A DNA stretch of 64,000 bases from Auanema rhodensis (lineage: Eukaryota; Animalia; Nematoda). A program made the position numbers and the translations under genes. The notes beneath the pieces were generated by a model. It made no database searches. It saw only the letters and a list, made by a program, of their open reading frames with translations, and was not told where the DNA came from. Location: positions 17,298,001 through 17,362,000 of the forward strand of contig OZ059896.1 in NCBI GenBank assembly GCA_964057225.1. The letters run 5' to 3'. How positions within the stretch are numbered: position 1 is the stretch's first letter; each line of letters opens with the position of its first letter. This document shows, piece by piece, positions 31,247-45,700 of this stretch.

Positions 31247-34200
31247 ATGAGAGAAATAGAAGCTCTTTCGGATGCCGAACTTCGTGCAGAACTTCAACAA
31301 TATAATTTTAATGCAGGCCCTGTAACTGGAACTACCAGAAGTGTGTATGAAAAAAAATTAGCCAAGCTAAGACTTGCGGGGCCTTCCGAACCAAAAGCCA
31401 GTTTGAATGTAAGTTGAACATGCTTTCGAAATTATTTTGTGATGTTTAGGAAACTTCTGCTAAAAGTAGAACTAAGTCGCCATCTCGTTCAGCCGCTAAC
31501 AAGTCTATTGTTAAACGAAACAACCAAAAGTCTGAGAATGAAGGTGAGCATTTTGGTTTATTTTGTTTTTGAATAGAAAACATATTTAGAAGCATCCGAT
31601 AACGACATTGAAATTATTTCCCCGAAGGTTAATCGGACCGCGTCATCAACGAAACCTGTGGTTTCAACTCCAAAAAAAAACAGAACTCCTTCTCCCGGAC
31701 CCATTCCTCCTCCATCATCAAGATCCAAGTATCAGTGTTCTTCAAAGTATATATCTTTTTTTCTTTTACAGACGTAATCTTAATGCATCTGTTTCCCGCT
31801 CTGGCAAAGAAGCCGCAAGTGTGCGCACAGCCCTACCTTTAGAGCCTGACTCTTCTCCCAAGAGCAGCAGAAATATATCACGCACCCTTACTCCACCAAG
31901 AAAAGCTAACAGTAGCAAGATTATTGGTGATCGTCCTGGCGGAACACCTCCAAGAGGTTCTACAACTTCAACCTGGGCTTCTAGAAGTATTTTAGAAGAA
32001 TCAGGACCTAATATCAGTATGTACCGTTTAATTTTCGGGCATTTTTCAAGATAGTGTTTAGGCTCTCGCAATATGCTCGAGCTGGGTAACACCACTGCTG
32101 AAGAATCAGATGGGGAGCCACTTGAGACCAGCAGAGTTTTCCATAACGTCAAGAAAACATATCCAAAAGCGTGGTCAGTTCTTGGAAGAAATGTAAGCTA
32201 TTTTAAGATTTGTTTATTCAATTTGGCTTGACATTTAGACCGAGACTCCAGTTCATCCTAAAAGAGAGTTAAAACGTAAAGCTGCTTCTGTAGGAAAGTA
32301 AGATAAGACAAATTTTTCTTATTTGTGGACGTTATTTCTAGGGATGTATCAACAATCCTCATGATTGTTCTTTCCGTTTTCTTCCTTCTCTTGGGAATGG
32401 CATATGTTGCGACCGCAAGGAAAGAAGTGTTGCTTGGAACTGTAAATATTCTTGCCAGTAATAGATTTTGAAACCTATGAGTATTTAATGAAATGTTTTT
32501 AGCAACTACAAGAGATACAATTGGATTTTTCTATACCTATGCGGTTTTACCTGTTGCTTTGGTTGCTGGAGGTAATAATATATAGAAACTGCTTAAATTT
32601 TATTTGATGTTTTAGCTGCCCTTCTTATTGTGGCACTTTTCTTCATGTATAAAAGAGTACAGGAGAATCAGCTGAAGGAGGAAGAAATTTATCAAAATCT
32701 TGTTGAAAAAATAATGGGTAAGAACGTTCGTATTTCTTTTTTACCTGTTATTTCAGAATACGTACGAGATTCTGCCGCTGATGGTGATGAGTTTATTTCC
32801 GTGCCTCATGTTAGAGACGTGATATTCCCTCCTGCCAAAAGGTATCAAACACATGGAGGATACGTAATTAATCACTGTTTTCCAGAACTAACTCACAGCT
32901 TAACATCTGGAACAGAGCTGTGGCTTTCTTGGACTCTAGTGAATCTCGCATTTCTACTGAAACGAGAGTCATTCACGGTCAGGAGTGTGCCGTCTGGCGT
33001 TGGCTTCCCTATAAGAAAACTGGCTGGCAAGGAAATGGTAGGCTTAAGCTTTAAATCGCTATGTGTTGTCTGTATAACTTGATGTTTTTTTTTGATCCCT
33101 GTGCTATGCATTGCTCTCGATCTATGTTCACAACTTTTATGAATCACAATAAACATTTTGATCCCAACATGACAGAACATACTCCTTTGCTAGCAGTCCA
33201 TTACGAGAACCGGCAAATTTACTTACTTCTGATTTACAGCTCTGAACACCATGAACAGTCCCAGCTCGCCCTTGTCTCCTTCATCCGCTCCAGCGTATGC
33301 TCTAACTAGATCCTTGAAAGTGAGAGAGGTTTTCGATAATAAGCTAGGGGAAGCGTTAGTTTGTGTTAGAATATCTTAAGGCATGTCTATCTTCAGTGTT
33401 GATTTTGCGGCCATTCGTCGTGACTTTATGGAAAAAATTTATCCAGTTCGCCCACTTCATGTAGGTTTTGGGACAGAGACTCCAGTAAGTGTCTATCATT
33501 GCTATAGGATCTTTTGTGTTTTTTTCTAGGAGGGGGTTGTTTTCTTGAAATTAAGTAGCTTAGAGGATGCTAAGGATGCTTTCACTTCTCTACATTCAAC
33601 TTGGTATAATGGTCAGTTTCGGTTATAGCAATATTTTAAAACTATAAATTCTCTTCTATTCTCTTGGAGGTTAAATTTTAAGGGACTATCTATTCTCTAT
33701 ACAAATTATTTGTTTGTCGTATTCAAATTTCGAATAAGCGCATGTTTTCTTGAGTGTTTCGCAATGTAAATTGATATCTTACTGCCGTTTTAACTTTCTT
33801 TCTATCTTTTGAGGCATCAGAACTTTGCCTTTTCCACCTTTCGTGTCGCACTCTAAATATTCAGTTGTAGTATTTCTATTTTGTTCTCTTTGATTGAACA
33901 TTTTTATTCGCTTGCTACAACATGCAATGCCAAATCGGACTCTTAAACCAACGTTCAATCTCGTTATGGAGCTTTTTAATCGTACCTTAATTATTCGGTG
34001 ACTTTGAAACATATTGAATTCATAACTAACAAGCACATTAATCGTCAAGCCACTTGATTTATTCTATTTTGATTCTTTTATGTACTAAACTTCCCCTTGT
34101 CATTCATTTCATTCGTCATATTTCTAATCTTCAGCAGAACAATCTGGAAAACATCTAGAGTAATTGCACGATTAGCTGTCCTTTCGGGTTGTTTCTTTAA

Positions 34201-42702: not shown

Positions 42703-45700
42703 ATGGAGAACGGAAGTGACTTCTCACCTAGCTCTTCACATCCAGCGACATTTTATGAATCTCCTATGTGCACTGTACTCAATACATCATGCGATTGTCA
42801 CTTTGAATATCAATTTTATGAGTACCCAGAAAGGATTCTTCTCGGGCTCGTAGCTCTTCCAATTATTATGTTCGGCCTTTGTGCCAATCTAACAAGCGTC
42901 CGCATATTCACTCATCGCTTAATGTCCAGTTCCTCTATTAACTGGTATTTAGCCGTTCTATCGGCTTCTGATACTTTTATTCTGGTGTCAGCCTTTTTCG
43001 TATTGTCAATGCCTAGACTAGGAGAATTCCTGTCACTCTGGAAATTCAATTATATCAGGTAGGTATTTTTTCTCTCCATTGTTACACATTGTATTTTATA
43101 TTTATTATTTTTTGTAAAATCTACCGAGTTCAATTCAAATTGTCGTTTCCCATTATAACCATTTTGCATTCGCTCTCTTTCTCTCATTCTCTTCTTTTCT
43201 CCCCCTCTCTCTCTTAATTTTCGTTTTGCTTCTTTCTTCAAATTCGATAGATTATTCGTGCTTATTAGCTAGAGAATACGTGTTTGCTTCAAGATTTATT
43301 TAATCTTTGAGAATATAAGTTCGGCATGCGCTTTGAGATCATTCTCGTCAATTTTATTGAACTCTGATTTTGAGCTATTTTCGAGCTTGTTTCAAGCTAA
43401 TACAATGATAGCGTTTTAGAATCTAGTGTTTCTTCGCATCATTAAGCGATTTTCTAAAGTTTTTTGGCGATAACTCTTTTTTTCCCGTTTGATAGCAAAA
43501 GTTTTTCGTAATGTTGTTACCTAAACATCTGCTGTAGTGTCTATGATTTTGTTTCTAACCGTCTTGTTTTGAGGGTTAACAGCTTGTAATCTTATTCCAT
43601 CAGCATCATGTCTTTTTGTTATCTTGTTTCCCCTTTTCTTTGCTTTTGCTCCTGGTACTTCTACGACTTCTCTACTTTCCATATCATCTGTTCGTCATGC
43701 AATGAATTCCAACTCATATAATAAAAAAAAATCCTTTGTTTCTTGAAACAACGACAGAAAAATCATTGTTTCTGTGTCACCGCGTGCAAGTTATGAAAAC
43801 GAAAATACATTCAATTCCAATGACCGAAGAATTTATATTTGAGCTTACAACAGATTGGCAAATCAAAGAAAATTGCCAGATTTGGAAGGAAATATGGGGA
43901 GATAGGAAACATTTGTTAAAGACGGGCTATGATGTCCACCGTTGGAGCATGTGCTCTCAAAAATATTCCTCTTAACTGAAGCTTAGCGGTTTGTGATCAT
44001 CAGTGAGCAAGCTCATAATCGTTTCGAACAGTCTGCAAACTATATGAGAAAATCTCCTGTCTTCTACTATCTAAACGTCCAGCTTTCATACCCTTTGTGC
44101 TTTATGTGTGCTTGTCGACTGCGTGTCCGTTTTTCGACATATATGAACATGTTTTGTTTTTTTCGTTGAATAATGGATTGTTGTCGGAGCTGAGAGGAAA
44201 CTGTTCCAAAGGGATAATTAGACAGGAAAGATAGACAGAGAGTTCGGAGAGAGGGAGAGATAGATGCTTGAAACAGCTGAAATTGAATATCTGTGGTTGG
44301 TGTACATGTGGTGTCATCTATGGCTGTGGTGCCGTTCATCGTCATCGTCATCATTATCATCAGGGTTGTTGGCGTCAACGTTGATGTTTAGAAACAACGA
44401 TTTGAATTGCCGATGGCGATATGGCTAAACATAGAAAAGTGAGATAGAGAGGTCTTATATACAAAATAATGCTAAAAGAGACTGTTCCTCCAGTTTCAGC
44501 TACTTTGATAACAGCTTACAGCTTAGAAATGAATGATTTAAACAAATTTGAAAAGCCTAGTTTGAAGTATGTTTTCATGTTCGATTGATTGAGCTCAAAC
44601 ACCAAGCAATGTATTAGATTGTTCTTCTTATTTTGCTTTCAATTTCCGTCACTTTTTTGGATGCGGAAGGGAACTGCTGACTTGCACAGATAACACACTA
44701 GATGTTGCTTTTCTTGGAACAGCGAAACGAGTTGTTCTGTCCCCATGTGACTAGGTTTGAACTGAGCCTAACGCTTAAGTTTTGGTTCTGATTTGTAAAA
44801 TTGTCTGCGATATATGATAGATGTGTCCTGCCAACAACGACAGCGATAGATGAAGCTATGACGATAGCTCCAGATAGCACCAAAGATCTATTTTGTACGA
44901 ACTACTGTGTGACGCCCCCGGATTCTAATATATTCCCATATTGTCATCACATATCTGATGAGAACTCAGAATGTTTGTATAATTTTCGATTCTGAAACTA
45001 TGACTGCCGTACTGTCAACGTCTTGTTTTGCATGTGTTTTGAGATTGAAATAAAGTTTGTGAATCTTGAACAATGAACGATAAGTGTGGTGATGGCAGAT
45101 ACAAGTGCAAGCCATCCTCCCTTGGTGCCTTTTCTGGTTTATCATGCATCTGCGTTTATTGGTCTGTTCATAGTTCACTCATTTGCTCATATGCTCTAGT
45201 TAACGGAGTTTCAAATGCCATCTGAAGTATTTCGATCTTTCAAATTCTGTTACCATGTGATACACCTTGTTTCCATTGGAATCGTTTTCTTTCGTTGATG
45301 TCAGTTGTTTCCCAGTTATTCTCAAAATCGTGTATTCGTCATGTTTCTGCGTCGGAAAAGCTGTTCAGCTTGAAAACACGGTGTGTTACAAGGGGTATAG
45401 TTAATCCGAAGTAAAGAACAAGGATAAGTTAACCAAAAGACTAGCTGTGTGATGAAGGAAAAAAAGTATTAAAAGAAAAAGGAGGAGAAGAAGGACTTTC
45501 CTTGTAAATCGTTGAGAACGGCTGGTGTTGAAAACAGTTGTTGGGGACAATATAACTTCTTTGCTTACACAAACAGTTTATCAATCTTATACTTTGCTTG
45601 ATTTAAGCTTTTGACTTTCCGCTTTATGCACACTACTTTCTGAATTGCAAATGATCACAAGTCACTGATTCTAAAAGCTTTGAAGCTATATGGGACATAT

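Follow-up and report, generated by a model that had tools for sequence, protein, structure and literature searches.

The window analysed here, a stretch of 64,000 nt from the nematode Auanema rhodensis (GCA_964057225.1, contig OZ059896.1, 17,298,001-17,362,000, forward strand; positions are those of the window), carries on its plus strand a MAN1/LEM-2 gene and, close behind it, a gene for a neuropeptide-receptor-like G protein-coupled receptor (GPCR). An initial annotation of this DNA had assigned to MAN1 a terminal exon that lies 8.8 kb away from the rest of the gene, just ahead of the GPCR start codon, and had proposed on these grounds a coupled or bicistronic transcription unit. We followed up this proposal by comparison with the genome of Auanema sp. 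JU1783 (locus L001; proteins P0001 for MAN1 and P0189 for the GPCR), with which the window is colinear from 20.7 to 57 kb and has the same seven genes. P0001 was retrieved by a full-database search with MAN1 exon 11. RNA evidence came from Logan contigs, that is, short-read assemblies built from 31-mers. The features of the locus are collected in Table 1.

Table 1. Features of the MAN1-GPCR locus, in window positions.
Feature	Position	Strand	Description
MAN1/LEM-2 exons 1-14	31247-33611	+	LEM domain, two hydrophobic segments, MSC domain, most of RRM/UHM
Intron 11, likely alternative terminal exon of a short LEM2-like isoform	33038-33239	+	202 nt; read-through, stop, AATAAA
Exon 14, penultimate RRM exon	33530-33611	+	ends HSTWYNG and one extra base (phase 1), then gtcagt
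Last MAN1 intron	33612-42384	+	8773 nt
Conserved non-coding block	35639-35945	.	core of ~130 nt nearly identical to JU1783; matches in all six frames
Most conserved intronic block	41865-41982	.	90% identity; ~400 nt ahead of the terminal exon
MAN1 terminal coding exon 15	42385-42458	+	74 nt; final beta-strand and RYxxRFP tail of RRM/UHM, TAA stop
Spacer	42459-42702	+	244 nt, MAN1 stop to GPCR ATG
Predicted FMRFamide-receptor-like peptide GPCR	42703-56911	+	7 exons, 368 aa
GPCR exons	42703-43058, 47618-47671, 51781-51934, 53253-53344, 53618-53744, 55034-55222, 56777-56911	+	
First canonical AATAAA after the MAN1 stop	43720-43725	+	within a conserved block of GPCR intron 1; long MAN1 transcript may end here

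Joining exons with GT-AG borders gave a MAN1/LEM-2 model of 15 exons (31247-42458) with an uninterrupted open reading frame (ORF) of 570 aa, which is 65% identical over its full length to P0001 (573 aa), an annotated protein that includes the far exon. The introns of this model measure 39-46 nt, except for the one of 202 nt (33038-33239) and the last one of 8773 nt. A LEM domain was detected on exon 1 (Pfam PF03020, E=2.4e-19), and two hydrophobic stretches in exons 7-9 were recognised by eye. The MSC domain was weak on the single exons 9-11 (Pfam E 0.02 and 0.26), yet it scored above the Pfam cut-off in the 65%-identical orthologue P0001 (E=2e-11). Besides, the protein has a C-terminal UHM-type RRM, which is a feature of MAN1 and distinguishes it from LEM2: the C-terminal 134 residues of P0001 (440-573) matched the UHM/RRM of human MAN1 (5zoj_D) over the whole domain with an E-value of 5.5e-15, the UHMs of RBM39 ranking next.

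The last part of this RRM is supplied by the far exon, which is preceded by a ttttcag acceptor and encodes (G) plus 23 residues before the stop. When exons 14 and 15 were each queried alone against the PDB, the best match was in both cases human MAN1 chain 5zoj_D, with residues 73-98 and 101-121, respectively, and hence in colinear and adjacent positions. A six-frame scan of the entire window with the human C-terminal peptide returned a single outlier, at 42387 (score 63 vs 29 for the next best; mean -27, standard deviation 12), and therefore there is no closer alternative exon; a nearer MAN1 terminal exon was rejected as a candidate, scans with the window's own peptide and the human one yielding the 42387 site only. 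The first 19 residues of the exon are 100% identical to those of JU1783, with 89% identity at the nucleotide level, and the far terminal exon is also contained in a UniProt sequence of Haemonchus contortus (P0144). The exon at 42385-42458 is the true, spliced end of MAN1, and we regard this assignment as secure. The structural claims of the initial annotation thus stand: exon 14 ends mid-domain in phase 1 at gtcagt, its missing piece is the far exon, an outsized last intron follows a series of short ones, the gap between the two genes is 244 nt long and has a ttattcag ending at 42669, and the GPCR junction 43058^47618 holds in the seven-exon model. An exon at such a distance is easily missed, and the RRM of MAN1 is truncated in several nematode annotations. 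In Ancylostoma duodenale, Necator, Nippostrongylus and Heterorhabditis, the MAN1 proteins as annotated (P0145, P0146, P0147 and P0003) terminate by read-through past the penultimate exon, directly behind WY(S/N)G; as these four gene models do not include the far terminal exon, the RRM appears in them as incomplete.

Within MAN1, the terminal exon is conserved beyond the protein level, as the codons at conserved degenerate sites are identical between the two Auanema genomes in 13 of 19 cases, vs 133 of 340 in the other MAN1 exons (P about 0.01). Synonymous conservation is also high in the 54-nt exon 2 of the GPCR (47618-47671; 14 of 17 codons identical and 95% nucleotide identity to JU1783), which is flanked by introns of 4.1-4.6 kb. 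The codon conservation in these two exons suggests that splicing enhancers may constrain micro-exons beside long introns.

The gene that starts at 42703 encodes a rhodopsin-class peptide GPCR of the FMRFamide-receptor-like kind, with a putative peptide ligand. Our model is 95.7% identical to the annotated JU1783 protein P0189 (367 aa), vs only 65% for MAN1. P0189 matches the Pfam families 7tm_1 (6.4e-17) and Srw (8.2e-8), its best relatives in the PDB are the neuromedin-U R2, motilin, neurotensin and QRFP receptors, and orthologues are named 'FMRFamide receptor' in two source records. With ~78% identity to Caenorhabditis and 59% to Plectus, the receptor is under unusually strong constraint for a nematode peptide receptor.

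Upstream of its long last intron, the MAN1 gene offers a second way to end. Read-through into intron 11 adds the residues GRLKL before a stop codon at 33052-33054, which is followed by a conserved AATAAA at 33148-33153, and a ATCACAATAAACATTT motif is common to this intron and the corresponding intron of JU1783. A strongylid RNA contig (L012), which stems from the same project as the bridging contig L003 described below, contains a MAN1 ORF of 496 aa that reads past the donor after the MSC exon and ends in GWQGSGRL and a stop; its 3' untranslated region (UTR) of 492 nt has a terminal AATAAA 15 nt from the contig end. L003, in turn, opens with exactly the 30 nt that it has in common with L012, and this overlap therefore marks the branch point of two isoforms in the assembly graph. 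Most likely, then, one gene makes a short LEM2-like and a long MAN1-like product. Caenorhabditis keeps only the equivalent of the short form: the LEM-2 proteins of Caenorhabditis and Diploscapter (P0153-P0159, P0037) align only to residues 1-446 of our model, ending right after the MSC domain, and are without an RRM. The two products resemble the vertebrate pair LEMD3 (MAN1) and LEMD2 (LEM2), in that the long one combines LEM domain, two transmembrane segments, MSC domain and UHM-type RRM and the short one stops after the MSC domain. In vertebrates, however, these are paralogues, whereas here a single gene would give both forms via an intronic poly(A) site, with the short form only in Caenorhabditis. 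In many nematodes, a single gene thus appears to give rise to LEM2-like as well as MAN1-like protein, while C. elegans, in which the function of 'LEM-2' was defined, has the short form only.

Between the two genes, neither an ATG nor an AATAAA occurs within 42385-42702, and the spacer itself has no common variant of the poly(A) signal either, its sole near match being an ACTAAA at 42459 that touches the stop codon. The poly(A) signal that would be looked for ~100 nt before the trans-splice site of an operon processed with the spliced leader SL2 is hence missing from the spacer. Compared with JU1783, the first ~70 nt of the spacer are poorly conserved, while positions 42530-42680 are about 90% conserved and contain TCTATCTCCTCTTATCTCATTTT, a CCCGCC GC-box at 42625 and an acceptor-like TTATTCAG ending at 42669. 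This acceptor (ttattcag) is conserved in JU1783; directly behind it lies an in-frame TAG, and a leader of 33 nt separates it from the GPCR ATG. The GC-box is found in five of the six spacers compared (the ascarid one is without it), in an orientation that is not the same in clades V and III, a pattern more in keeping with DNA bound by a protein than with a signal in RNA. The TAYYTT Ur motif is absent from the four clade V spacers (window, JU1783, Ancylostoma ceylanicum and the strongylid) and occurs only in those of clade III, although the motif is short and degenerate and this makes a weak test. RNA folding of the spacer and of the conserved blocks described next gave no convincing structure. 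From its conservation and the GC-box, the 3' part of the spacer looks promoter-like.

The last MAN1 intron is T-rich on the plus strand (41% T, 25% A) and harbours about ten colinear conserved non-coding blocks that the window has in common with JU1783, and whose identity equals or exceeds that of MAN1 coding exons 1-14 (53-79% between the two genomes). A coding role for the blocks was rejected as they match in all six frames, nested genes were rejected as no gene is called in the JU1783 intron, and transposons or repeats were rejected as no intron sequence recurs elsewhere in the window. Given these six-frame matches, the poor folding (the z-score of the most conserved block is only -2.5 on the plus strand) and an Rfam E-value search of 30-52 kb that returned no family, the blocks may be read as DNA regulatory elements. 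The only Rfam match, below threshold, resembled the C/D-box small nucleolar RNA snoR07 (43434-43517, minus strand; 30 bits vs a gathering score of 44, E=0.29) and is probably due to chance. Further conserved blocks, with up to 85% identity to JU1783, lie in intron 1 of the GPCR (43678-43792, 44120-44228, 45864-45942, 46655-46849 and 47072-47229).

An excess of T over A on the plus strand extends from ~33.4 to 43.7 kb (33360-43700) and recurs as the same domain in JU1783 (L001 12060-21230). In 500-nt bins, the AT skew is -0.24 in the MAN1 intron vs -0.035 in the GPCR introns (P=6e-6). The fitted change-points fall at 43700 in the window and at 21230 in JU1783, and the first canonical AATAAA after the MAN1 stop, at 43720 in the window and at 21234 in JU1783, is aligned between the two, so that the skew edge lies within 20 nt of a conserved AATAAA in both species. 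We infer that this domain might be the footprint of a long, germline-transcribed MAN1 unit, which would put the promoter region and exon 1 of the GPCR into the 3' region of MAN1. The coincidence of a skew edge with a conserved AATAAA in two species also suggests a possible way to locate transcript ends without RNA data.

In JU1783, an intron of 7.7 kb lies between the penultimate MAN1 exon (end near locus position 12330) and the terminal one (start near 20036), and a spacer of 248 nt leads to the GPCR. Beyond Auanema, the spacer from stop to ATG measures 94 nt in A. ceylanicum, 216 nt in the strongylid RNA and 542 nt on an ascarid contig. In a spirurid-like genome, a spacer of 202 nt separates the end of the terminal exon at 14504 from the GPCR ATG at 14707, and a protein predicted from this assembly (P0012) fuses MAN1 to the first GPCR exon. 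MAN1 and GPCR have neighbouring locus tags in A. duodenale and Nippostrongylus, and in Toxocara and Anisakis they are found on contigs of equal length, which we took to be one contig. No terminal exon was found within 10 kb downstream of the penultimate exon of A. duodenale, which puts its last intron at more than 10 kb. The pair is present in both Rhabditina and Spirurina and is therefore older than their split, having been lost several times since; the expansion of the intron is a feature of Rhabditina. In Ditylenchus destructor, the RRM is kept, the last intron has 143 nt, and a different gene on the opposite strand comes after MAN1. In Caenorhabditis remanei and C. nigoni, lem-2 and the GPCR are on separate chromosome-scale contigs; neither a called gene nor a relic exon is present within 10 kb upstream of the receptor gene in these species, the candidates for a terminal-exon relic upstream of the C. 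remanei GPCR having been rejected with scores at noise level. The loss of the RRM thus coincides with the loss of linkage in Caenorhabditis; in Ditylenchus the RRM persists without linkage.

At the RNA level, Logan contig L003 (SRR15275139, 2322 nt) holds, in this order, 135 spliced MAN1 codons, a spacer of 216 nt and a complete GPCR of 366 aa with its 3'UTR. Its MAN1 part reaches from the end of the MSC domain through the whole RRM, ending in GRLVSVKYVRDRRYAERYPETAHI and a stop, and is 87% identical to H. contortus P0144; the source of the RNA is therefore a strongylid. On the genome of A. ceylanicum, the GPCR part falls into seven blocks spread over 15 kb, and L003 therefore derives from spliced RNA. 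Two contigs from other runs, L004 and L005, are 100% identical to L003 over 1977 and 1795 nt, and L004 likewise covers the RRM junction, the spacer and the GPCR. In six of the eight index blocks that carry the GPCR, the longest contig has 2-5 kb, long enough to reach into the MAN1 coding sequence. In a strongylid, then, the very long MAN1 intron is spliced and RNA coverage is continuous from MAN1 into the GPCR. The last 10 nt of a C. elegans leader, SL1 or SL2, were found on none of the RNA contigs. An ascarid MAN1 transcript (L006) ends ~230 nt beyond the stop, well short of the GPCR ATG at +542.

How these two genes relate can be pictured as follows. The short LEM2-like mRNA would end at the poly(A) signal in intron 11, while the long MAN1-like mRNA would finish the RRM/UHM with the 74-nt exon 8.8 kb farther on. 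As the initial annotation had argued, this exon is placed such that the long transcript has to pass through the region upstream of the GPCR. Moreover, because the spacer offers no poly(A) signal, polymerase engaged on the long form would run on over the GPCR promoter region and exon 1. Most long transcripts would probably end ~1.26 kb downstream, at the conserved AATAAA in GPCR intron 1, and some would go on and be spliced through the GPCR exons. The GPCR itself most likely has a promoter of its own in the conserved block of the spacer and likely also uses the conserved non-coding blocks in the last MAN1 intron. Shared regulatory DNA together with read-through would account for both the size of the intron and the lasting linkage. 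We give this picture of overlapping, partly co-transcribed units, similar to a hybrid operon and with regulatory DNA of the GPCR inside the MAN1 intron, a probability of about one half.

Several points weigh against these overlapping units. The RNA contigs all come from a species other than A. rhodensis, and contigs built from 31-mers can merge overlapping transcripts, so they do not prove a single molecule that spans both genes. L003, moreover, goes unbroken from the donor of GPCR exon 1 to exon 2, which, in the strongylid at least, does not sit well with intron 1 as the end of most long transcripts. By our own estimate, chance alone would give ~0.5 AATAAA per 1.26 kb of such composition; that T-over-A skew marks germline transcription is something we infer, and the skew pattern in the hookworm loci is too noisy to be used. 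The promoter in the spacer is proposed from conservation and a GC-box. The intron blocks were not detected in Caenorhabditis, hookworm or spirurid, where only coding exons match, and they could regulate MAN1 or another gene.

Under a classical SL2-type operon, one precursor from the MAN1 promoter would be polyadenylated in the spacer behind MAN1, and trans-splicing at TTATTCAG|A (42669/42670) would free the GPCR and be its main route of expression. The two genes are indeed on the same strand, the clade V spacers of 94-248 nt fall within the operon range (PMC7668243, PMC7652881), the linkage is conserved, RNA contigs bridge both genes, and a conserved acceptor lies 33 nt ahead of the ATG. A predictor fusion such as P0012 is a sign of a mis-annotated operon (PMC7668243), and operons of neuronal receptors such as deg-3/des-2 are known (cited in PMC7652881). 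Yet neither AATAAA nor a common variant of it occurs in the spacer, bar the ACTAAA at the stop codon; the Ur motif is absent from four of four clade V spacers and spliced-leader sequence from the RNA contigs; and the skew domain stops 1 kb into the GPCR instead of covering it. The GPCR is also apart from lem-2 in Caenorhabditis and is not the next gene after MAN1 in Ditylenchus. Tissue-restricted genes are, besides, uncommon in C. elegans operons. We therefore consider a plain SL2 operon rather unlikely, and the evidence fits overlapping units better. Of the initial proposal of a coupled or bicistronic unit, the coupling is supported by the old linkage, which the relatives bear out (JU1783, Ancylostoma, spirurid and ascarid, though not Caenorhabditis or Ditylenchus), by the P0012 fusion and by the strongylid contigs over both genes; its reading as a simple operon is not, in view of the spacer without poly(A) or Ur signal, the promoter-like block, the end of the skew in GPCR intron 1 and the separate GPCR of Caenorhabditis.

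Should the two genes instead be independent and merely abut, the long MAN1 mRNA would terminate at a non-canonical signal within the spacer, the GPCR would have its own promoter just downstream, and the bridging contigs would be without function, a product of infrequent read-through or of merging during assembly. In C. elegans, some 13% of 3' ends have no recognisable signal, the first ~70 nt past the MAN1 stop are as unconstrained as an ordinary short 3'UTR, the promoter-like block and the GC-box are conserved, and the ascarid L006 does end before the GPCR. The 94-nt spacer of A. ceylanicum, however, could hardly accommodate a 3'UTR, termination and a promoter, the bridging path was recovered from three runs and is matched by the long contigs in six of eight GPCR index blocks, and the linkage has been kept over clades III and V though nematode gene order generally decays fast (PMC7652881). 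Independence thus seems improbable to us. At the other extreme, the RRM-bearing isoform could always use the poly(A) site of the GPCR in an obligate bicistronic mRNA, the choice made at intron 11 then also setting the amount of GPCR RNA. L003 is unbranched from the exon 11/12 junction to the GPCR 3'UTR and begins precisely with its k-1 overlap to the contig of the short isoform, and the missing poly(A) signal in the spacer agrees with this as well. Nevertheless, both the skew boundary and the conserved AATAAA within GPCR intron 1 suggest that the transcript ends earlier in the window and in JU1783, assembly simplification drops minor branches, and a downstream ORF without a spliced leader would be poorly translated, all of which makes an obligate bicistronic mRNA very unlikely. 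That the RRM-bearing isoform and the receptor come from one transcript, with the poly(A) choice in intron 11 gating receptor RNA, is likewise improbable; if true, it would constitute a conserved alternative-polyadenylation switch that ties a nuclear-envelope, Smad-binding isoform to neuropeptide signalling.

Operons, hybrid operons and regulatory entanglement are already known (PMC7652881), and the MAN1-GPCR arrangement is a variation on them; a description of this arrangement was not found in the searchable literature. With the SL2-type operons of nematodes (for instance deg-3/des-2 of C. elegans and H. contortus) it has in common the same strand, a gap of at most a few hundred bases, kept adjacency, RNA that bridges the genes and an acceptor shortly ahead of the second ATG. 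It differs in that neither a poly(A) signal nor a Ur motif (described, with the usual intercistronic distances of nematode operons, in PMC7668243) can be recognised in its spacer, in that the 3' part of the spacer is far more conserved than a usual intercistronic region, and in that MAN1 reaches the junction only via an 8.8-kb intron and a 74-nt exon. Hybrid operons, with promoters inside them (Huang et al. 2007, cited in PMC7652881), come closer, as the GPCR could be expressed both by read-through and from its own promoter, with a conserved promoter-like block directly upstream; here, however, the DNA presumed to be regulatory sits in the upstream gene's last intron, and the MAN1 transcript appears to end in GPCR intron 1, so that the units overlap. 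Mammalian read-through or conjoined genes, too, have spliced RNA that links exons of adjacent same-strand genes, but the present case is conserved over nematode clades and leaves both ORFs intact and separate.

In genomic regulatory blocks, bystander genes are held in conserved microsynteny by regulatory entanglement. The MAN1-GPCR locus is alike in that the intron of a broadly expressed gene is full of conserved blocks beside a tissue-restricted, highly conserved gene, with a linkage retained for long. It differs by its scale, ~9 kb vs hundreds of kb, and by the position of the bystander's last exon beyond the blocks, through which it must transcribe. The overlapping units proposed above would thus offer a compact and conserved case of a housekeeping gene that transcribes through the upstream regulatory DNA and the first exon of a neuronal-type receptor, and a locus tractable for studies of transcriptional interference, of hybrid operons and of the persistence of gene-pair linkage.

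A weak periodicity of T/A triplets with a spacing of ~10-11 bp, reminiscent of periodic A/T clusters (PATC-like), was seen in the long MAN1 intron of the window (33612-42384) and of JU1783 (L001 12336-20030) and not in the GPCR introns; it is too weak to be interpreted. Further upstream, MAN1 is the last of four successive plus-strand genes, following an HlyIII-like gene (24393-27092), an IPP-2-like gene (~27877-28795) and a short-chain dehydrogenase gene (29267-30677). The gaps among them are a few hundred bases long and the gene order is that of JU1783, and MAN1 may itself be part of a larger same-strand cluster or operon (24393-42458).

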